Shown: positions 9,526 through 46,812 of the stretch, one piece after another | Layout of the letters: every line of letters begins with the position of its first letter | Numbering within the stretch: position 1 is the stretch's first letter | Assembly (NCBI RefSeq): GCF_000143415.4 | Contig: NW_003314324.1 | Location: 348,011 to 412,010 of the forward strand | From: Selaginella moellendorffii | Lineage: Eukaryota; Plantae; Lycopodiophyta | Length of the DNA stretch: 64,000 bases | Reading direction: 5' to 3' | The notes under the pieces: model-generated | Told to the model about the DNA's origin: nothing | What the model saw: only the letters and a program-made list of their open reading frames with translations | Databases searched by the model: none | Translations under genes and position numbers: made by a program

Positions 9526-12500
9526 ACTAAATTGCTACGCGTTGCGTGTAGCAACGCTTGGTTTGCTTAATGGTAATTTTATTATTACTTATTAATCTAA
9601 TTGATCAAATAAAGTTTATAATTATAAGCATGTTTGTAATTTATAAACACAAGATTAATCTTATTGCATATCAACCATTAGATGATAGAATAAAAAAGAA
9701 TATATTAGAAAGTGTTTAGGAAAGTTTATAAATTATAAATACCAGATTAATCTAAATAAATACCAACCATTAAATGGTAGAATATCCTAGAATATCCAAG
9801 CATATTCTAGGTATTTTCACTATATAGGTTTGCTTAAGCAAACAAAAAATGCAGATGTCTAATATTTTGGAAGAATTAGCATTTAGATTCTTATTGTAAA
9901 TCTATTATAGTTACATTAAAGTTTAAAGGTATGAGAGCACAATATGCTTTCCAAAGTAAGTGAGCAAGCTTAAACACTTTGCAAAAGTTTTTAATAAAAT
10001 ATTTAATACAAATCTATGATACACATTATTAAATACCAATTGAACACCTTCTAACACACCTTTTTTCTAATAAAAAACCCAAATTTTTATTATCCTTATT
10101 TTTAGTAATTATCACACTAAATGTAAGAGAGAACAATTGGCCTTGCTACAAACATATATCAAAGGTATCTTAACTTCAAATATGTCATATCAAGATTGAT
10201 TAAAAGATAATAACACACAAAACTAATAATAAAGCAAACACTATACAAGATAAAAAGCCTTTTAAAATTTGAATTTCCATCAGCTTTGATATGAAATATG
10301 TTATCTAAATTTCTTAAAATAAGAAAATTTTCATATTCAAGTAGTTTTGTATAAGTTATATCATAATCTCTATAAATTTTTTTTGTAATTTTCTTGTTTT
10401 CTTTCCAAATTTTTTAATATGCTTGCAATATATTTTAGCTATCATGCTTTTCGGAATCACCTTTAATTTACCTCTCACTCATTACTTGAAATGATCTACA
10501 ATCCAATTCACCAATGTCTTTTTGTTTCCCAAATTCTTTATCCCATTACATGAATGTTTATTCACAAGTAAGATGAATCTTTGTCAATAAAAAAAGATTA
10601 AATGAGTCTTTCTTTTGCATCAAATTGTGTATCATTTCCTCTTTAATTGCTCATGGTAAATTCAAAATATTTAGAAATAGCTACATTTTTCATTGCTATT
10701 CTTAGATCATCAATAGAATTATACCTTGCCGAAATAAACTTCATTTAGTTGTGATTAAACAATATCTATTTAGCCATATTTTCTCTAGGTTAAAATAGAA
10801 TATTCTTTTAAAATGCTCTTAAACTTCATAGGCTTTTTTTGCAAATTTAAAACTTCAAGAGGTATTAATTTGCAAATATAACTTTTAAGCAGTTTTCCCT
10901 TAATTTTTCTAAAATATAATATTAAATATTGCCAAACATAGTTTTATTATTTAACTCTTGACAACTCTTACTCTTGCAACTTTACTCTCATCTCTTTATT
11001 GGTGGGATGATGTGATTTTTTATAATAATTAGTTATTCTCTTTAATGGTTTATACCTTTCTGCATTACCATATGTTTTTTGTGGTTTGCTCTGGATTAAT
11101 CTATTGAGCTCTCACATAAAGTAATGGAGAGATAGGCTCTTGACTCTTTGGGTGAGGACTTTTATTATTTTTTATTTCACTAACACTTATACATTTTTTA
11201 AAAAATTTTTATAATGCTTCTCTCAAAAAGTAAGCCTTTCTAGGGTTGTTTTACCTCGACTTTTATAAATAAAGACCTTTGTTGTCTTTTTTTTCACTAG
11301 TTTATCAATTTTAATTCTATTGTGCAACTCAATCATTTTGCAAATCTAAGCTTTCCTATTATTTTTGTGAGTTTTGTGTCAATTTTTTAGAGAAAATATT
11401 ATTTATCTTTCATAGATTACTTGGTTATAGGATTGATTTTTTTTTGCATGGCTAAGCTAATAATGATAGCTTGTAGATGCCTACATTATAAGAAGAAAAA
11501 TGTATCTGTAAGAATATTTAATAGCCACTATATTCGTGTTGAGCAAAATAAATATGGAAAACATTTCAAATGGAGTTAAAGATGGACATTCTAGAAATTT
11601 AAACTCAATTTTATTCAATTGATGTGGAATTTATATTTTAACTATCACTTAGATTGTCACTTAAAGTTTAATGTTGAAACTTCAACAAATTTGGTTTCAA
11701 AAGAAATATTTTTAAAAAGCAAATGCTTATAGCAACATTTAGATATCCTCCCCTTATTCTATGAAGGACACACTTGAATGTTCAAGGTCTAAAAATGTTA
11801 TATTTTCTGGATATTAAAATTAAAAAATGGATTAAATTACTAAACTTAAAGTAATGGATATATTACTATGGCATGGCCAAATATAAACAAGGAGCACATA
11901 TCATATTGTGGGAATACTCAATTTCAACTAACTTTTTTTCAAATAAAAGATTTCATTTCTAATATATTAGCTTATTGAAATGATTGTTAAACCTAAAGCT
12001 AACTCAATAAAGAGAGCATAAGTTTTGGTATAGTTTTTTGTTGTAAAAATATTAAATCTAAATTCAACATAAAAGCTACCTCTTGTTTGTGTTTATGGAA
12101 TGCAATATTAAGCATTTACAACCAAGGATGATAAGTTTATACAAAGGTGAAATGAAGAGTAATAAGCATATTCTTTTATCTGGAAACAAATCAATAAATA
12201 AGTTAGTATTTTACATTACACCACTAAAGACAAGAGATAAAGGATTATAATCAAGCTTAGTACCTTGAACTTCAATGCATTAAAATACTTATTAATATTT
12301 TTACTCTAATCAGATTTTTAGACTAATTGGCTAATGCATGGATAAACTTTTTAGTTTTGATTTTTTTTCCTTTAAAAAGATTTTGGAATAAAGAACAAAG
12401 AGAAACTTAAAAATTATAAAGATGAACAAATTTATGCTATTATATACTTGCTTGTTTGTTAGTAACATGGTGGAAATTCTTTGTTACTAGCAATTTACAT

Positions 12501-16191: not shown

Positions 16192-17614
16192 AATCTTTCT
16201 TCTTTCTCTGGTTGTCTCAATAAACCACTGATCAATTCAAAGGGGAAAAGTCGAGAATATCCTTAGTATCATTCATTGCTAGCGAGCGGTCAAATAACAG
16301 GACTGACTCTTCATTAAAGAAACCAGAGAAACCAAGAGAGGTTAACCTATGAACCACCCAAACACATTACAAAACACATTGCATGCTCACACCCAACACT
16401 TATTACTTCTCTCCTCCCATCCTTCCTATATGTGAACCAAGAACCCTCACACACCCATTTGCCACATTAACACTTGGTTAGGGTTTGACCAAACTGAACG
16501 CCGTTACATATGTAATGGTCATTCCCCCATTAAAATTTGTGTGTCCTCACACAAGATAGAATACCAAATTTGTACCATGCTCTACCAGGAAACAAATATT
16601 ATGCATGTTTTCCTGGATTTGTGTCATATTTACAGATTAAACCTCCATGCTCCAAACCAAACTGACATCCATTTAATTTTGAGCTGCTATAACTTGCTGA
16701 TTTCATAGCCACTACAACCTTGGCCCTTTGACAATTTTCTTAACAAATAGAACCTTTGGGATTTTCTATCTCTTTTTTTACACTTAAGTAGCATTTGCCT
16801 CATTCCCCTAAGAAAGAAATGCTAGCATGCTACAGCATTAACCACAATAAGCTTCCTCTCACATGCACGGGGTGTTTAAATAACTCTCTTGTTTGGGTCA
16901 CTTGCTATGCCTCAAAAATCAGGTTTTGCCTCGATTTGATGCATCACTTTTCAGCAACACCCTTAACATTCTCACTAAAAGTCTCAGGTGCCACACAAAA
17001 CAAGCTTTATTTACATTGCTCAAATTAGTAACCACTCATGATGCTCAATTTAGCAATCATTAATCATCCACAGATTCTCATACCCGAACCACACCCACTT
17101 GCCACGTCAGAACTTATGATTAAACCAAGCGTCCGATATTCTTCGTGAGAACGCTCCAGTTGTTCGCGCAGAGACTGGTCCCAGACTTCCACTCCACCCT
17201 TCGACTTTGCCGCTGCTCGCAGCACAGTGAAAGTGGCGGATCTCGCAAATTCCTCAATGCCGCGAAGCTCCAAGAACTTTGATGCCTCCTCCATGCTTTC
17301 TTTTTAATCTCGATCATCGATTGGCGCGCTCAAAGATTTCTCATCCGTACGCGACTTCTCTTCTCCAACAGCGAAATCTTGGAGCTCGATTCCTTCCAGC
17401 TCGCGATAGCTAAGAACAAGAACCCTAAAATTTTGTGGACACCGTTGCCACTAACATCTACCAGAGAGAGCGCATATTCTCCTCGTTTAAACAGGCGCCA
17501 CGTCGTTGCACATCCTCTGGCCAATAGCTCGATGACACGTTGGCAGTAAATGCAACGTGGCGTGGACTATATATAAATTTGAGTAGGGCAAACTGAGACG
17601 AAGGAGGGAGAGAA

Positions 17615-19007
17615 ATGGAGGCTATGAAGCGCGCGGCGATGCTCGGCGTGTGCGTGGGAGGGATTTGGGGCGCCTATGTCACGCAGGGCGTGCTGCAAGA
17701 GACTCTGTAAGTGGAATCGATCGATCGAGTGAGAGTCTGATTGATCGAGTGATTTTGTGTGTGGCAGCTCCACAAAACGCTTCGGCCCCGATAAGCAGAG
17801 GTTCCAGCACCTTGCATTCTTAAATTTCGCGCAGAGCGTGGTTTGCTTCCTGTGGTCATTCATAAGTAATGCATTGTGTGATTTTTTTTTTCCTTCTAGA
17901 GCTCACGCCGCTACTCTTTTTCTCCAGTGCTTGTCCTCGTTTCACCGAAGAGAACCTCTCAAGCTCCACTATGGGCTTACTGGAGTGCCAGCATTACGAA
18001 TTCCATTGGTCCCGCTTGTGGAATCCAGGCTTTGAAATACATCAGCTATCCTGCCCAGGTGAGCTTTTGGATTTTACTTGTTTTTCTCATTTGTTCTTGA
18101 AAGCTTAAAGTTGAGAATTTCGTTTCCAGGTTCTGGCGAAATCGTCGAAGATGATTCCAGGTATGTGTATTGAATCTGAAAAGCTGGCTGGTATTTAAGT
18201 GTGCTCCTTTTCGTTTTCTCTTCTGAATCCAGTGATGCTCATGGGGACAATTTTGTACGGTGTCCGCTATACAATTCCTGAGTACCTTTGCACCTTTCTC
18301 GTCGCTGGAGGTGTTTCCATTTTTGCATTATTCAAGGTTGTGTGATTTTTCGATTTTTCTCAAAGGTGAGATTTTTCTTTCTGTCGTGCAGGGTAGTGTA
18401 AAAGCCAGTAAAGTAGCGAGTCCGAATGCTCCTCTTGGATACGGGCTATGCCTGTTAAATCTGGCGTTCGATGGTTTCACAAATGCAACTCAAGACTCTA
18501 TTACGATGAGGTGAGGAAAAACACAAAGTAACTTTCTTGTTTGTGTTTTTGTGTGGAACGAGGCTTGACAACGAAAGTTTCATTGTGTGCTGCTCCAGGT
18601 ATCCGAAAACAAGCGCTTGGCATATAATGATGGGAATGAACTTCTGGGGTTCCATTTACATGGGTCTCTACATGTTTGGATGGACGAGCGGGGGATTCGA
18701 AGCTCTGAGCTTTTGCAAGCAGCACCCGGAGGCTACGTGGGACATTTTCTTCTTTTGCCTCTGCGGAGCCGTCGGCCAGAACTTCATCTTCCTTACCATC
18801 AGCTGGTTCGGAACGCTGGCTCTCACGACAATCACAACGATGAGGAAGTTCGTAAGCATTCTCGTGTCGTCGCTGTGGAGGGGCAACCCGCTGACGCTGG
18901 AGCAGTGGATCGGCGTGTCGATGGTCTTTGCTGGGCTTTCGTACCAAATTCTCCTCAAGTGGAGGAGGCAGACGAAGAAGCGGCCGCTAAGAAAGAAGGC
19001 CGTGTGA
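17615..19007 (+). CDS. UTR3: UDP-galactose/UDP-glucose transporter (UTR1/UTR3, SLC35B1 type), multi-exon
   Basis: Motifs GIWGAYVTQGVLQE, FLNFAQ, ALKYISYPAQVLAKSSKMIP, DGFTNATQD, GAVGQNFIF and TTMRKF; C-terminal KKAV ER-retrieval signal. Confidence 0.9.
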
Positions 19008-35641: not shown

Positions 35642-37354
35642 TTCTTATTTCATTTTTATGTCATTAAATGTAAATTTATGATCTTTTGATTGTGATAATT
35701 TTGCTTATCCTTTGCACATGTTTTATTCACATCTCATTCCATGTGGTTATTCTTCATTTTTCATGGTTTGGAGGCACAATGCACTAATGTAAACATGGTG
35801 CTTCAATTACTTTTATAAATGCTTTTCATTTATTGTGACTTATTTGCAGCACAACACTTCAATCTAGGTAGCAATTTATTTGCATAGAAACAAGCGTGAT
35901 CAATTAGAGCATAAACATGAGTATAAAACCATTTTTGGATGATCAGGGCATTTAATGCAATGGTTTTTCCATGAGTAAGTGGATTTTATTATAACTATAG
36001 TAAAGTATTAGTCCATTAATTTTTTATATTTTAAATCACATATACATATTTTTAGCATTACAATAATTTGTTAATCTTGAGGGTGTTAGTTTGTTAAGTT
36101 TGGGCTTAATATGCAAAACAATTTTCATTACTCTCACTAATAAAGTACCTTAAGTATGCAATAATGGCAAACTCATTTAAAAGACATTCAAGCTCTAGCT
36201 CACATATTGAAAAAACCCATTCCCACAAGCTTATTAATATGTTAAAAAATCTAATATAACATTAAAATTTGTGTAGCACAAAAATCACATACATAGCGCA
36301 AATTTGAACTTTGTAGCAGGCACCAACGTATGCCCACCTATAAAAAATTTTACACCTTATGTCCTTGCCTATGATATGTCTTATTTGTTTAACTTTATGT
36401 CTTTGCCTTTGACATGTCTTAAAAAAAGCTAATGCCTAACAATTTTGGTGTTTAACAAAAAATGAGTCTTTTTCTGTCTTCTTCACCCACTTCAATGTTT
36501 TTTTATAATATATATTCAAGATGATTACCTATGATAAAGAATCAACTTCTTATAGCTTACTTACCTAAACATGCCCTCACCTACACTACAACAAAAAACA
36601 CTCAATGTATTTGAATAAATCCTTCACTTCATCAAGGTCAAACAAGAGAAAAAATACATAAATTTTTCTATCTCATTTTTATGTCATTGAGTGTAAATTT
36701 ATGATCTTTTGATTGTGATAATCTTGCTTATCTTTTGCACATCTCACTCCATGTGGTTATTTTTCATTTCTCGTGGAGGCACAATGCACTAATGTAAACA
36801 TGGTGCTTTAATTACTTTTGTAAATGCTTTTTATTTATTGTGACTTATTTGCTGCACAACACCTTAATCTAGGTAGCAATTTATTAGCATAAACGCGAGC
36901 ATGATCAATTAGAGCACAAATGCGAGTATAAAACTTTTTTTAGATGATTAGGGCATTGAATGCAATGGTTTTTCTGTGAGTAAATGGATCTTACTATAAC
37001 TATAGTAAAGTATTAATTCCATTAATTTTTTGTATTTTAAATCACATGTACATATTTTTAGCATTATAATAATTTGAGGGTGTTAGTTTGTTAAGTTTGT
37101 GCTTAATATGCAAAACACTTTTCATTACTCTCACTAATAAAGTAGTTTAAATATGCAATAATGGCAAACACAACCCATGACATTTAAAGACATTCAAGAT
37201 CTAGCTTGCATGTTGAAAAAACTCATACCCACAAGCTTATTAATATGTTAAAAAATTTGATATAATGTTAGAATTTGTGTAGCACAAAAATCACATATAT
37301 GGCATGGACTTGAATTTTGCAGCAAGCACCAATACATGCCCACCTATAAAAAAA
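35642..37354. repeat. ~700 bp direct duplication (35642-36347 and 36666-37354) in AT-rich decayed DNA
   Basis: The two segments are collinear, from 'catttttatgtcatt..tgtaaatttatgatcttttgattgtgataat' to 'tgcccacctataaaaaa'. Confidence 0.88.
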
Positions 37355-38504
37355 GTTGTGTTTAAAATATTATTTTGTGAGTAACACATATATATTATAA
37401 AAATTTAAGCACACATGTAAATTTTTATATATATTTTGCACACTTACACTTGCTAAATTGGCCACCCCAAGTACCCTTCCCCCAAAAAAATAAATGGCTT
37501 ACCATACTAGAATTAGTAAGTACATATTAGATATAAATTTCATGATTATTACCACATAAAATCATGTTTTTGTCATGAGAAAGTTTTTTATTTTATATAT
37601 TATTTTATACAAGAAACAAATCCACTTAAACCACTTACAAAATGGTAAAAAGCTCCAAAAGCCTTCACCACACTTAAAATAAATTTTAATATGGAAGAAA
37701 AATTATAATATCTTATTCTAAACTCAATTAAATCAAGTATGCAAACACTTTATAGAGAGATTTTGAATAGATTTATTAATAAAGCTCAGAAAAATTGAAA
37801 TGATCAATTCATTATAATTTCAAACTTTCAAAAAAGTGTTATTTATTGCATGGAGGAAATTTTTTTGTATATTACGATCTAAAAGTAAAATTTTGTCATC
37901 CTTGTGATCAAGGTGTAGAGCATGATAAAATCTATTAACCTAAAGCCAATATTGAATAATAAGAAAAAGCAAATAAAGAAAAAATAACTGTCAATAAAAA
38001 AGAATACTTTAATTTTATCATAAAAAATTTATAATATAAATAAAATTTCCCAAAGAAATAATTTTTACTAATTAAATAATAAATGAAATATTTAGAAAAA
38101 ATGCATAAGGATATAGTTATATAACAGAGGTTTAGACAATTTTTGTTAAGTACTAACTTAAACTATATTATGCATGTTTCTCATCACCTAACTAAAAACT
38201 CGATTGTGTCATTGTATCATTAACTTTATGTCCTTGCCTTTGACTTGTGTTGACATGTCTTTAACCATTTTTGGTGTTTAACAAAAAATGAGTTTTTTTT
38301 GTCTTCTTCACCCACTTCAATGTTTTTCTACAATATATGATAAAGAATCAGCTTCTTACAATATATATTCAAGATGATTGCCTATGATAAAGATCAGCTT
38401 CTTACAGCTTACTTACCTAAGCATGTCCTCACCTGCACTACGACAAAAACACTCAATGTATTTGAATAAATCCTTCACTTCATCAAGGTCAAACAAGAGA
38501 AAAA
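36390..38504. repeat. ~270 bp direct duplication (36390-36653 and 38221-38504) carrying decayed minus-strand exon-like pieces
   Basis: Shared 'gtcttcttcacccacttcaatg' and 'ctcaatgtatttgaataaatccttcacttcatcaaggtcaaacaagagaaaaaa'. The minus strand reads FDLDEVKDLFKYIEC...|GTAAG. Confidence 0.8.
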
Positions 38505-39253
38505 ACAAAAAAAAAAAATTAAAAAAAACCCTGTGTACATTGGTCCTATTGTTCAAGTGGGAGTTTACTACTTAGAGGACAATTCTCTTCCATACGAATT
38601 AAATAGCTTTATGCATCAGTTTATCAATTGACCTTTTAAAAAGGGACAAAAAGGAAGTAAATACTTCTGATATTTCTTTCACATTACCTGAATTGATCCT
38701 GAATTACTATTTTTCTAACATTCTCTGTTTTTAGAGAGAGAGAGGAGCTTAGTTGACATCTGGTCTTGTGATTAACTGTCTTGTTTGGAGTGTACCTCTT
38801 AACTGGTATGGTTTAGGGGAATTTGCAAGTGGTTATGGAAACACAGTAATCCTAAAAGTTGGGAAAGGTCTTGAGAATCTAGCTGGTGGTGAGCGAGTAC
38901 AAGGGAGAGCGGTTGAGGTAGTTGCGTGTTGATGACGACCCAGAATCAAGCATTGGTGCAACACCAGACACCCAATACCTAAACAGTTTTAAAGATGCAT
39001 GAATGAATATGTGTGGGATGTGTGATCGCAAAACAAATGCCCACCCATCAAATGGCATCTCAAAGCGCATTAATTGGAAGTAAATTTTACGCAAGAACTG
39101 GGCCTAGGAGGGGGGTGGATGCGGCCCCATTCTTGCTTAGCCGCCCACTCCACTAGAGCTCTACCCTTCGCCCTTTTGACCACAGTCAGAATCTCTTTAA
39201 AAGGTTTGGACACCGTTTTGCCCTAAATTCGGAAGATTCTTTCTGCCAGAGAC

Positions 39254-41007
39254 ATGACGAAGGCGTTGCACCTCGCCATTCTCTCGGCCGCATGCACCTT
39301 CTTCTCCGGATTCCAAAACGTTGCCATTTGTTCTTGGCTCCAGCCATTTCTCCTCTTGCATTTCTTCCTCAAGTCAGGGATTTCGCGCAATTCTTGCTCA
39401 TGGCGCTCCGCGGCGCTCACAATTCTCCTGGCGCTCCTCCTCCAGACCACCGCCGCGAGCCTGGCGTTCCTGGCATTCTTCCCGGGAAAGGTGAGACCGG
39501 ACAGCTCCACGGCCAGCAGCGTGCCAATTGTGGGAATAATCTGGGCACTGGCGCTGTGGGTGTTTCTTCTCCTCCCATTCCTTGCAAGCATCGGCTACAG
39601 GAAGCGTTTTGATCGAGCAAGAACGTCCCAGCCGCTGGTATTCGCGTCGATCTGGACCACGGCGTGGTTCCTGTGGAACCGATTCGGCGGCGTCGGAGCC
39701 CTCCTCCATCCCGCCGTGTCGCAGGTGACAATCTTGCCCCTGGTGATGAGCGCGGGCGTGTGGGGGATGGATGGGATCGCATTCCTCATGGCGTGGTTCT
39801 CGGCGATTCTCCACGACAGGACCGTTCTCGACGAGTCTCTTCCCAAGATGGACAAATCCGACAAGAAGCGTGCTACGCAGCTGCATCGCGGCCACTCCCT
39901 GGCGTTTGGAGCCATTGCCCTCTCGACCTTGTTCTACGGCAGCGCCAGGGTCTCGGTCTTCTCGGGCGATTTCTTCCAGAAGGACATCGCCCTCACGATG
40001 AAGAAAACAGTGCCGGTCTCTTGCGTCCTGGGCAAGCTCCTCGTCTACGAGGACATGGATGTGATGCTCAACCGGACGAACCAGCGCCTCCGAGCCGGCG
40101 ATCGACTGGTGCTCTGGTCCGAGGCTGCTGTGAAACTCCACCTCAAACAGGAGAGGGATTCTCTCCAATTCAAAGCCGGACAGATCGCTTCCCAGCACGG
40201 CGCCTACGTTGGCATCACTTACGAGTACAACGACGCGAGCACTGGAAGAGTCGGGAACTATTTCGACCTCGTTCTTCCCGATGGCTCCATTGGTTTTAGC
40301 TACAGGAAAGCCCACTTGGTTCCATTCGCGGAGTCGTATGTCACTCCGGGGGATCCCATTCTTCCTGCCATCGACACCGAGCTCGGCCGGATTGGAGGAG
40401 CGATTTGCTTCGACTTCGAGTTTCCAGACCTGATGCGCCAGGCCGGGGAAAAGAGGTAGAGCAAACTTTCAGTATGGTAGCCTAGAGTTCCAAGTTTTTG
40501 GTGGTGCTTTGGCAGGATTGATATCATGCTCCAACCAGCCGAGACTTGGGGAGCAACCGGCCCCCGGGTGAAAGAGGCCGATGCCTTCCGTGTCGTGGAG
40601 AACGGCTTTAGCTGGTTCCGATGCTCCACGGGAGGCGTTTCAGGGGTTGTCGATCCGTATCTCCAGACATTCGACTACAGGTGCGACAGTGTTAGATCAA
40701 TGTTCGGCTGTGATATTCTTTTGGTTTCCCTTCGCTTGACAGGGAGGGTATCTCCGACTCGGTCTTCGCCATGGCGCTCCCAATACTTGGGAAGGCGTGG
40801 ACGCTTTACCCCAGCTATGGCTGCCTTTTCGCGTGGCTAGTGGCAGCGCTCGCTGCGGTACACGTCTCCATGCTCTGCCTCCCTCTTGGAGCAGTGATGT
40901 ACATCCTTGACAAGTCCCCGCCCGCCTTTGTGTTTTACATCACTGGTGACCGATCGTTCAAGGAGTTTGAGAAGTCGGAGCTAAGTTGCGTGCTGCTGGG
41001 CGAGTGA
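39254..41007 (+). CDS. Apolipoprotein N-acyltransferase (Lnt)-like membrane nitrilase-superfamily enzyme, ~543 aa; exons 39254-40455, 40516-40680, 40743-41007
   Basis: Multi-TM N-terminus; triad motifs LWSEAA (E290), YRKAHLVPFAE (K352) and AICFD (C385); RVVENG, SGVVDPY, and TLYPSYG followed by a final TM. Exons total 1632 nt in frame. Confidence 0.82.
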
Positions 41008-41232
41008 TAGCGATCGCTATCCATCGTGCACACGCTGCCGACGCTAATACATGCGACCTTAAGATTCCTGTGACGCAGGCAGTGGAGCCCAATGCGTGGG
41101 CCAATGTATATAAAGCACCGGTAATACGAGGGGACCGACACATTAGAGAACTCCTTGCATTGAGTAGAGCTTCAATCGCTCCTTAGGTGGGAGCGCAAAG
41201 AATCTACGCTTTTTGGATGTAGCGGCGCAACT

Positions 41233-42675
41233 TTAGGCCAGATCTTTGGAGGGATTCAAGGCCCCAGAGAGCAACACGTAGGCGTTGGATCGCGTCGGCT
41301 GGAGCGTCACGGAATGCTTCGCTGCAAAGCGCGCTGGCTCATTGCTGGCGTGAACTTTACTCGCTGACAAAAGTGTCATCCAGGCCGTGGATTCGGGGCG
41401 GAATGGCATGCTGGAGACGAGCTCCTGGGCTTGCTTGAGCTCGCCGGAGCGACCCAAAACATCGATCAGGCAGTGGTAGTGCTCGGGCAGCGGGGGGATT
41501 TCCCAGTCCCTGGTCATGGTCGAGAAGTATTTCTTCCCTCGGTCCAGGAGCCCCACTCGGCTGCACGCCGCCAAGACGCTCACGAAGCTCAGGGCGTTGG
41601 GTATGATGCCCTCCATCTCCATCGCTCCGAAGAGCTCGAGAGTTTCGTGCCAGTAGCCATTCTGGGTGTTGCCTTGGAGCATTGTGTTCCAGGTGACTAC
41701 GTCCTTCTCGGGTATGGAATCGAAGAGGAGCATTGCTTCTTTCATCCGGCAAATGTGAGCAAGGGCTTGGAGTGCTGACGTCCACGAAAGGTGGTCTCGC
41801 ACTGGCATGGATTCGAACAAGGTCAAGGCTTGTTCTAGATGCCCGTTTTGGGCATATGCCGAAAGCATAGCGTTCCACGAGATAAGATCCGCATAGGGCA
41901 TGTTGTTAAACACTTCTCTAGCTTCTGAAATACTGCCACTGTTTGCAAGAATTTCTATCATGATTGTGCTTGCAATGACGTCCTTTTCTGGCATTTTATG
42001 GAAGATTACCTTTGCTTCGTTACAATGCCCAGATTTGCCATAAGCAGCTATCATCGCCGTCCAGCAAGTTATGCCGTCGTCCGGCAATCTATCAAACATA
42101 GATCGCGCCTCTTCTAGTTTTCCATGCGATGCGTATGCAGCGATCATACAGTTCCATAGAACGCTGCTGTGTTCTGGAATACCATTGAAGAGTGAACTTG
42201 CCGTGTCAAGATGCCCGTTTTGAGCATATGCTGTAACCATGGCATTCCAGGAAACTATGTGTTTTTCAGGCATAGAATCAAACACTTTCCTAGCCATCGT
42301 AATATGTCCTGCTTGTGAGTATGCTGTGACCATTGTGGTCCATGAAATGACGTCTCTCTGTGGCATTTTTTCGAACAGACAGCACGCTTCCTCTAGGTGC
42401 CCATTTGAGGCAAATGCTGAGATCATTATATTCCATGAGAAAATGTTGGGATAGAGTATGGCGTCAAACACTCTTTTTGCATCTTGGGCGCTGCCGCACT
42501 TTCCATACATCTCGATCAGAAGGTTCGCAAGGTATCTGTCTGATCGATGTTGCTCAGATCCCAGGATCTGAGAGTGGACCTCCTTTGCGCGGAATAAGTC
42601 GCTGGAACCTCCAAGGGATCTGATAAACTGTACGTAGAAGCTGCGTTGTAGACACATAGAATGTATGAAATGCAA
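41233..42675 (-). CDS. PLS-class PPR protein rich in short (S) motifs, ending in an E-type extension, no DYW
   Basis: 480-aa ORF with ~31-aa repeats 'A..F..MP..D..SW..M..AY...G' and HYHCLIDVLGRSG...MPF.P...AW.TLLSA. Confidence 0.9.
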   Translation of the reverse strand: MHFIHSMCLQRSFYVQFIRSLGGSSDLFRAKEVHSQILGSEQHRSDRYLANLLIEMYGKCGSAQDAKRVFDAILYPNIFSWNIMISAFASNGHLEEACCLFEKMPQRDVISWTTMVTAYSQAGHITMARKVFDSMPEKHIVSWNAMVTAYAQNGHLDTASSLFNGIPEHSSVLWNCMIAAYASHGKLEEARSMFDRLPDDGITCWTAMIAAYGKSGHCNEAKVIFHKMPEKDVIASTIMIEILANSGSISEAREVFNNMPYADLISWNAMLSAYAQNGHLEQALTLFESMPVRDHLSWTSALQALAHICRMKEAMLLFDSIPEKDVVTWNTMLQGNTQNGYWHETLELFGAMEMEGIIPNALSFVSVLAACSRVGLLDRGKKYFSTMTRDWEIPPLPEHYHCLIDVLGRSGELKQAQELVSSMPFRPESTAWMTLLSASKVHASNEPARFAAKHSVTLQPTRSNAYVLLSGALNPSKDLA

Positions 42676-44031: not shown

Positions 44032-44386
44032 GAGATGTTCTCTGCTTGAGAGATCAAGCTAAGACTTGGTAACTATGAGAATGTTTTTAAAAGGTGCCAA
44101 TCTTACATTGGTTACATCGATTTTTGCGCATCGAAAATAATCATATTCATTCATTCATTCCTGTTTTACAGCCTTGGAATTTTCTTGCCGTACAATATTT
44201 AGTGACCGAACTAAGAACATAATACGAAGAATAGAAACGCTGCAACTAGAAAGAATCCAAGAACCAAGATCTCGACGGATGGAACCACATACCTTGGACA
44301 ATCGAAGCGATCATCGGTTGATTCTCGCTCGGAACAAAACTTTGATCCTCGCGCGCGCGATCAACACCTGCAAAACAGCACAAGCA

Positions 44387-44472
44387 GCACGCTCCCTACG
44401 CAGGTATTAACCTGTTCAGGTGCAAAGGGACTCTCTCAGCCTGTCCCTGAGACGGACAAGCACCCCTGGTGC
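44387..44472 (-). ncRNA. TPP riboswitch aptamer in the THIC 3' UTR
   Basis: Minus strand GCACCAGGGGTGCTTGTCCGTCTCAGGGACAGGCTGAGAGAGTCCCTTTGCACCTGAACAGGTTAATACCTGCGTAGGGAGCGTGC. P1 GCAC/GTGC, CUGAGA and CCUGA-CAGG-UAAU-CCUG-CG-AGGGA consensus; ~270 nt after the THIC stop. Confidence 0.97.
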
Positions 44473-44743
44473 TACCACTGTCAGCAATGCAAAATAGCGA
44501 ACCTTCAAACTTATAGAGCAAAAACGAAAGAGAAATCTAGCTACACATGCGAGAGCACCACCACTTATTCCCTACAAACCAAACCAAACACTACCTTCAA
44601 ACTTGATCGTCATCTTCTCCAGATCCAAATCCTGGCACTCCTTTCCTTGGCGAGATCACCTACAAAGACAAAGCTTTCAAGCAACTGAAGAAAAGAAAGA
44701 AAAACTTACCTTGTGAGACAAGATGATCTTTGGTCCATCGCTC

Positions 44744-46812
<2,069 letters not shown>

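Follow-up and report, generated by a model that had tools for sequence, protein, structure and literature searches.

An Lnt-like gene of Selaginella moellendorffii and its eukaryotic family

How does a gene that resembles the one for bacterial lipoprotein N-acyltransferase (Lnt, EC 2.3.1.269) come to lie in the nuclear genome of a vascular plant, and what might its product do there? Lnt is treated as an enzyme of the bacterial envelope and as an antibiotic target, and an Lgt/LspA pathway is not known in the host eukaryote. The question is raised by a locus of Selaginella moellendorffii at positions 39254-41007 (+) of what we call the window, the whole 64-kb stretch of DNA that was analyzed (contig NW_003314324.1, positions 348,011 to 412,010). 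In a preliminary description of the window the locus was presented as a gene of bacterial type that a land plant had domesticated in its nucleus after horizontal acquisition or, as a bracketed alternative, patchy retention. Based on the analysis given here, we consider it highly probable that this is a functional, transcribed nuclear gene for an eight-helix integral membrane enzyme of the Lnt fold, that it belongs to an old and patchily retained family, and that Lnt-like acyl-transfer chemistry can be predicted for its product. The label supported by the data is 'Lnt-like' and not 'Lnt'.

The gene and its transcript

The gene opens with an ATG-initiated open reading frame (ORF) at 39254-40459 and has three exons; all of its coordinates are on the forward (+) strand. 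Exon 1 (39254..40455; codons 1-400 plus 2 nt) was delimited by its ORF and translation, by Pfam CN_hydrolase and NCBIfam lnt matches and by the helices of an AlphaFold2 (AF2) model, and codes for transmembrane helices 1-7 (TM1-TM7, residues about 4-236) and for most of the nitrilase-fold domain, with residues E290, N335, K352, E360 and C385. Exon 2 (40516..40680; 165 nt) codes for the C-terminal third of this domain, and exon 3 (40743..41007) for its end, the motif TLYPSYG, the final helix TM8 (residues 484-512, 40825-40911), a short cytoplasmic tail and the stop codon. Between them lie intron 1 (40456..40515; 60 nt) and intron 2 (40681..40742; 62 nt), both bounded by GT..AG and both in phase 2. 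Joined, the exons give 1632 nt, that is 543 codons and a stop codon, in frame, in agreement with the intact 543-residue spliced ORF with two short introns that had been proposed.

Splicing was found at exactly the junctions predicted earlier (40455/40516 and 40680/40743). Both introns are skipped in transcript-sized contigs of four runs from four public studies, the same material runs unspliced through 40747-41079, and the coverage by assembled contigs places the transcript approximately at 39236..41200 (+). These runs are only guessed to be RNA, with assemblies of transcriptome size; still, contigs that lack the introns show that a spliced transcript exists.

The ratio of nonsynonymous to synonymous change (dN/dS) was calculated between the window gene and three other copies. 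It is 0.11 against the allelic or orthologous copy L010b (8 nonsynonymous, 23 synonymous), 0.31 against the paralogue L010a (35.2 and 34.8) and 0.23 against the paralogue L011 (53.5 and 67.5), the most diverged of the paralogues, in which about 50% of the intron sites differ and the whole gene is about 90% identical at the DNA level. The coding sequence is thus under purifying selection, and a pseudogene was rejected on the grounds of splicing and dN/dS. The window gene is a genuine nuclear gene, with both expression and constraint in evidence.

Fold and active site

The structure was modelled for P0001 of S. moellendorffii, a protein 96-97% identical to the window protein, from an alignment of 96 sequences. 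The AF2 model has a mean pLDDT (predicted local distance difference test) of 92.5 and a pTM (predicted template modelling score) of 0.93, and together with hydropathy it gives seven N-terminal transmembrane helices and one at the C-terminal. When it was compared with the Protein Data Bank (PDB) by Foldseek, the top 24 matches were all Lnt, aligned over the full chain with TM scores of 0.64-0.76, and soluble nitrilases ranked after them, spanning only about 250 columns. VIA-align placed model residues 1-503 on residues 5-508 of E. coli Lnt (8B0K) with a Z score of 29.1 and a root-mean-square deviation (rmsd) of 3.3 Å over 457 residues, and similar values (Z 28-29, rmsd 3.3 Å, about 457 residues) hold for the E. 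coli and P. aeruginosa structures as a whole (8B0K, 5N6H, 5N6M), with which the model shares eight transmembrane helices and an extracytoplasmic nitrilase-fold domain set between TM7 and TM8. Soluble nitrilases and amidases reach a Z score of 22-24 and superpose on residues 250-490 only. A soluble plant nitrilase was therefore rejected in view of the full-length Lnt fold. The Lnt architecture with a nitrilase-fold domain that had been read from the letters is supported by this superposition of a predicted structure and by a Pfam CN_hydrolase (PF00795) score of 34.8 bits, above the cutoff of 23.2.

The same model bears on orientation. Lysine and arginine residues, counted by hand from the sequence and the AF2 helices, number 3, 5 and 7 in the loops that are cytoplasmic in Lnt and 0, 2 and 1 in the outside loops, and the protein begins directly with TM1, with no presequence. 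From the positive-inside rule and the superposition on Lnt, the nitrilase-fold domain is predicted to be extracytoplasmic, facing the lumen of the endoplasmic reticulum (ER) or secretory pathway, or the apoplast. We also observed an N-x-T sequon, N273-R-T (residues 273-275, window 40070-40078), in the predicted luminal domain; it is kept in the Selaginella paralogues and aligns with an N-E-T sequon of Sphagnum, and it would fit a glycosylated luminal domain.

For the active site the reference was the translation of the E. coli MG1655 lnt gene, and conservation was counted over 89 members of the eukaryote group described in the next section. It was claimed earlier that the Glu-Lys-Cys triad is complete, and this was borne out: E290 (40121..40123), the putative general base, K352, the putative catalytic Lys, and C385 (TGC, 40406..40408), the putative nucleophile, align with E. 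coli E267, K335 and C387 and are kept in 88, 89 and 84 of the 89 members. K352 opens the stretch K-A-H-L-V-P-F-A-E (40307..40333), which closes with E360, the equivalent of the Lnt-specific fourth catalytic Glu, E343 (85/89). Four further Lnt residues are retained, N314 as N335 (85/89), Y333 as Y350 (87/89), W415 as W412 (82/89) and R432 as R426 (83/89). The motifs that had been quoted are all present, namely LWSEAA around E290, YRKAHLVPFAE around K352 and E360, AICFD around C385, and TLYPSYG followed by the final helix. A separate observation is that in five of the 89 members Gly takes the place of the catalytic Cys in the alignment; these could be inactive paralogues, or they could reflect an error of alignment or gene model.

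In E. coli Lnt, it was shown that E267, K335, C387 and E343 are needed for formation of the acyl-enzyme (PMC5500890), and that the variants Y388W, E389A, V339A and S78W form the acyl-enzyme and fail afterwards (PMC5500890). In the window protein V339 is kept as V356, F416 and G342 are replaced by G and A, and the two residues after the catalytic Cys are F386 for Y388 and D387 for E389; across the eukaryote group D occupies the latter position in 87/89 members and F or L the former in 84/89. On this alignment the residues of step 1 are kept and two residues of step 2 (Y388 and E389) are substituted, conservatively.

Several points weigh against the reading of an old family of Lnt-fold acyltransferases; those that concern the protein are given here and those that concern its descent are given with the tree. 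Of the two profiles proposed as a check on the domain assignment, CN_hydrolase passed as stated above and Pfam LNT_N missed its cutoff (15.6 bits vs 27.1). The best NCBIfam match is the Lnt equivalog TIGR00546. Its cutoff is 132.9 bits, and it gives 53.3 bits with exon 1 and 67.7 bits with full-length P0001; scores range over 51-99 bits in eukaryotic members and lie at 88-103 in most of their nearest bacterial relatives. Unlike the E. coli and P. aeruginosa enzymes, to which its identity is only 15-18%, the window protein has no counterpart of the lid loop, a segment of ~19 residues after E343 (about 344-364 in E. coli) that borders the substrate cavity. The column of the essential R352 is a gap in all 89 eukaryote-group members, and the spacing from the catalytic Lys to the catalytic Cys is 33 residues vs 52 in E. 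coli. A true Lnt orthologue was accordingly rejected, given scores below the curated thresholds, the absent lid loop and the replacement of Y388/E389 by F/D. Finally, for every eukaryotic member we infer the activity, the acyl donor, the acceptor and the location from homology.

These differences invite another possibility, that the protein is a membrane-anchored hydrolase and not an N-acyltransferase. It would then be an amidase or deacylase with an N-acyl lipid as substrate, or else a phospholipase-A-like enzyme whose acyl-enzyme is discharged to water. Soluble amidases of the nitrilase superfamily (Nit2/omega-amidase, PH0642, Nesterenkonia amidase, N-carbamoylputrescine amidase) share with the window protein the alpha-beta-beta-alpha domain, the E-K-C triad and the C-[FY]-D motif, and it is to them and to Nit proteins that the C-F-D motif and the short loop after the catalytic Lys are similar. 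PH0642 and yeast Nit3 are the best phmmer matches of exon 1 in the PDB, and the lid loop and step-2 residues of Lnt are those that are altered. Yet the soluble enzymes have no membrane domain, hydrolyze small soluble amides and have no counterpart of the Lnt-specific Glu that lies eight residues beyond the Lys, while the window protein retains both this Glu (E360) and the whole eight-helix domain with lateral access from the bilayer. A Glu of the E343 type has been tied to formation of a lipid-derived acyl-enzyme (PMC5500890). Taking both sides into account, we regard a hydrolase as an unlikely reading of the protein, and Lnt-like acyl transfer as the one to be preferred.

Descent of the family and the Selaginella locus

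Homologues were collected by an exhaustive HMMER search of 1.84 billion cluster representatives, which gave 101 matches at E<=1e-30 and 1115 at E<=1e-10. Those with names include the green algae Closterium NIES-64 and NIES-54 (Zygnematophyceae) and Chromochloris zofingiensis (Chlorophyta), the mosses Sphagnum jensenii, S. magellanicum, S. balticum and S. compactum, the protists Balamuthia mandrillaris, Paulinella chromatophora and one from MMETSP, and the fungi Dichotomocladium, Mortierella, Basidiobolus and the basidiomycete Dendrothele, together with about 12 genera of Glomeromycotina from every sampled order. A word-indexed search with a 38-sequence profile (A1) found nothing new, and a scan of genome contigs found only one bacterial locus, in a metagenome-assembled genome (MAG) of Rariglobus. 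A search of the ESM-Atlas by features, made with a member of the sister group, was of no help with taxonomy. The window protein is 96-97% identical to LOC112349392 of S. moellendorffii and 90% identical to LOC112351564. These RefSeq entries belong to the same gene family as the 'CN hydrolase domain-containing protein' of Sphagnum, Glomeromycotina, Mortierella and Basidiobolus; entries of this type give no function and most do not mention the Lnt-type membrane domain, and one Balamuthia entry was automatically named 'Apolipoprotein acyltransferase'. A literature search, limited to one library, found no paper on eukaryotic Lnt homologues. The window gene already stands in RefSeq as an uncharacterized protein; the new element is that a lid-less family of the Lnt fold, spread across eukaryotes, has been recognized.

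The main tree was built in IQ-TREE from 64 rows and 528 columns under LG+C20+F+G4 with posterior mean site frequencies (PMSF). It separates the eukaryote group from the nearest bacterial group with support of 100/97. Within the eukaryotes a streptophyte clade with the order (Closterium,(Selaginella,(P0065,Sphagnum))) is supported at 100/99, the embryophytes at 93/79 and the union of the streptophytes with a group that contains Chromochloris at 95/84. A FastTree of 145 rows recovers the same groups. Two unnamed members of the sister group lie on eukaryotic contigs, one beside COG7 and the other beside fragments of RRM and HDAC genes. In the presumed bacterial group, two members are surrounded by densely packed bacterial genes, among them two-component systems and multihaem cytochromes.

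The closest relatives outside the eukaryotes are bacterial Lnt-like proteins that we call short-loop (for example P0009, P0054, P0055 and P0151), which contain LNT_N and CN_hydrolase domains and are 23-29% identical to the window protein. Their K-to-C spacing is 31-34 residues in 46/49 cases, so that they also lack the lid loop, and D follows the Cys motif. They differ from the eukaryotic proteins in forming the separate clade mentioned above and in still matching Pfam LNT_N. Most of them score 88-103 bits, too low for the Lnt equivalog as well, which leaves the function of these proteins uncertain. Since this nearest bacterial group is also without the lid loop, the sequences indicate that the eukaryotic family derives from, or is sister to, the short-loop Lnt-like subfamily. 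Structural neighbours in the ESM-Atlas give a view of the wider bacterial diversity: Lnt-like domains are found there fused to a HAD hydrolase (Verrucomicrobiota), to TatC (Latescibacterota), to a GT2 glycosyltransferase (Actinomycetota) and to an Rce1-like protease, and P0150 (1204 aa) is another long fusion. These bacterial fusions suggest that the Lnt fold serves diverse envelope pathways.

The introns are a direct record of descent. The gene of Sphagnum jensenii has four introns, of which the third and fourth match Selaginella introns 1 and 2 in alignment column and in phase (2), and the exon between the shared introns is 165 nt long in both plants. In Closterium NIES-54 a phase-2 intron, read from tblastn boundaries and GT/AG splice-site sequence, interrupts the codon just before a conserved V-D-I, which is the site of Selaginella intron 1. 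An intron common to Closterium, Sphagnum and Selaginella implies that the common ancestor of Zygnematophyceae and land plants already had an intron-bearing gene. Independent transfers would hardly leave a spliceosomal intron at one shared site, and the sharing is direct evidence for vertical descent followed by loss. Within the green lineage the gene has thus been passed down vertically from the ancestor shared by Zygnematophyceae and land plants at the latest, and probably from as early as the ancestor of Viridiplantae. Most land plants seem to have lost it, and in Selaginella it seems to have been amplified.

This evidence decides against an explanation of the locus in which Selaginella or the early land plants took up a bacterial lnt gene by a recent or lineage-specific horizontal transfer and the introns were gained later. 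Such a transfer would fit a best curated family match that is the bacterial Lnt, nearest ESM-Atlas clusters that are bacterial by their features, and a family that is not seen in seed plants among the hits. However, the tree places the Selaginella genes within the streptophytes, and these within a group that spans eukaryotes; Sphagnum and Closterium share intron positions and phases with Selaginella; and the approximately unbiased (AU) test rejects a grouping of Selaginella with the bacterial group (p 0.025, delta lnL 63.5). AU tests were run under LG+F+G4 with fast searches, a simpler model than that of the main tree, and this belongs among the adverse points. We consider the bacterial transfer to be largely refuted and scarcely credible. 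The horizontal acquisition and domestication put forward in the preliminary description is not supported, given the place of the gene inside a eukaryote-wide clade with species-tree order; its bracketed alternative, patchy retention, is favoured by the order of the streptophyte clade and by the shared introns.

A second possibility is a transfer, in either direction, between early land plants and arbuscular-mycorrhizal or other early-diverging fungi. Glomeromycotina and Mucoromycota are ancient symbionts of plants; the family is found in every sampled order of the former and in the latter, and Paraglomus is among the first matches of the plant protein. Against it, the sister of the streptophytes is not fungal and is instead the group with a chlorophyte alga and other eukaryotic contigs (95/84), the alga Closterium has the gene with the same intron, and the AU test rejects Selaginella with Glomeromycotina (p 0.005). 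An exchange of this kind is very improbable, if slightly less so than the recent bacterial transfer.

A third explanation reaches further back and carries more weight than either of these, though we still think it doubtful. The gene may have entered eukaryotes once from a short-loop Lnt-like bacterium and then spread mainly by eukaryote-to-eukaryote transfers, one of them into an ancestor of streptophytes or Viridiplantae, instead of coming down from the last eukaryotic common ancestor through many losses. The eukaryotic sequences form a single clade apart from the nearest bacterial group, their distribution is patchy, their deep branches are not resolved, and those of fungi fall into three separate clades, all of which can be accommodated in this way. 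On the other side, nothing in the data requires transfers, the green branches follow the species tree and the intron is shared. This order and this intron mean that any such transfer predates the split of Zygnematophyceae and land plants.

Our preferred reading, an old eukaryotic family retained in patches, has its own adverse points on the side of descent, in addition to the simple model of the AU tests. Descent from the last eukaryotic common ancestor and an early eukaryote-to-eukaryote transfer cannot be told apart in the tree. The label 'eukaryotic' for the group rests on about 35 members that are named or were checked by context, and most of the sequences in the tree are unnamed. Neither the named hits nor the streptophyte clade, which takes up 11 rows of the 145-row tree of near-full-length matches, showed a seed-plant, fern, liverwort or hornwort sequence, no genome-by-genome search having been made. 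Absence from seed plants and from other land plants is suggested by the expectation that an angiosperm orthologue would form a cluster of its own.

The neighbours in the window are typical plant genes, namely a STOP/IDD zinc-finger gene, a DUF702/SHI gene, a pentatricopeptide repeat (PPR) gene, THIC, a leucine-rich repeat (LRR) kinase, a P450 and a laccase, and the region is collinear with S. moellendorffii scaffold GL377603.1 at 94-97%. Bacterial contamination was excluded on the basis of these neighbours, of this synteny and of splicing, and the earlier statement that the gene lies among plant genes holds.

Scaffold GL377603.1 (L010) has two tandem Lnt-like genes, at 10001-11760 and 16778-18531, with repeats between them. 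The window gene is the counterpart of the second, beside the same PPR gene. Only this second copy is present in the window, where it is preceded by AT-rich repeated DNA (window 35776-38128 vs L010:7493-15674); one copy or two is a copy-number difference between haplotypes or assemblies. A third, truncated copy on the same scaffold, P0003 (LOC112349345, 373 aa), leaves the frame of the family just after the catalytic-Lys motif and has no Cys, and is probably a frameshifted pseudogene or a mis-annotated model.

Two features of the neighbouring genes were also recorded. The PPR gene, which is intron-less (ORF of 480 aa, 41233-42675, -), and the Lnt-like gene run towards each other, their stop codons only 226 bp apart, and the pairing of the two genes is found in the reference scaffold as well. 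Neither this 226-bp spacer nor the DNA up to about 5 kb upstream of the Lnt-like gene contains an ORF for a Gly/Cys-rich peptide. Further on, a thiamine pyrophosphate (TPP) riboswitch aptamer, RF00059, lies at 44375-44477 (-), close to the long THIC ORF (44744-46546, -) on its 3' side; it scores 68.2 bits, the gathering score being 54.3. An aptamer 3' of THIC is the usual arrangement of this gene in plants.

Predicted chemistry and its meaning

What reaction might the protein catalyze? By analogy with Lnt, the likely mechanism is acyl transfer through a Cys thioester at the extracytoplasmic face of a membrane. The nitrilase-fold domain would face the ER or secretory lumen or the apoplast, and a glycerophospholipid of the membrane would enter it sideways from the bilayer. 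In a first step C385, activated by E290, would attack an ester of the phospholipid to form an acyl-thioester, with K352 and E360 completing the site. In a second step the acyl chain would be handed to an amine on a membrane-associated acceptor.

The acceptor is where the eukaryotic proteins may depart from the bacterial enzyme. With Y388 and E389 substituted and the lid loop absent together with R352, the acceptor is probably not a bacterial diacylglyceryl-cysteine lipoprotein. Candidates are an amine on a lipid, the N-terminus of a protein, and water. We propose, tentatively, that several eukaryotic supergroups have an unrecognized enzyme of the Lnt fold that faces the lumen or the exterior, takes its acyl chain from a phospholipid and N-acylates an acceptor specific to eukaryotes; this acceptor may be an amine lipid, giving N-acyl lipids of the N-acyl-phosphatidylethanolamine type or others, or the N-terminus of a secreted or membrane protein. 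If true, eukaryotes would have a route of lipidation that has so far gone undescribed in them; Selaginella and Sphagnum would have kept it, and seed plants would seem to have lost it.

The attractive reading of the locus as a case of horizontal transfer is thus corrected, the intron shared among Closterium, Sphagnum and Selaginella being direct evidence of vertical descent. What takes its place is a complete enzyme of the Lnt fold, with all the residues that form the acyl-enzyme, which is expressed and under selection in a vascular plant. Members of its family are found in fungi, including all sampled arbuscular-mycorrhizal lineages, and in amoebae, algae and mosses, and this raises the question of what it is that eukaryotes acylate.

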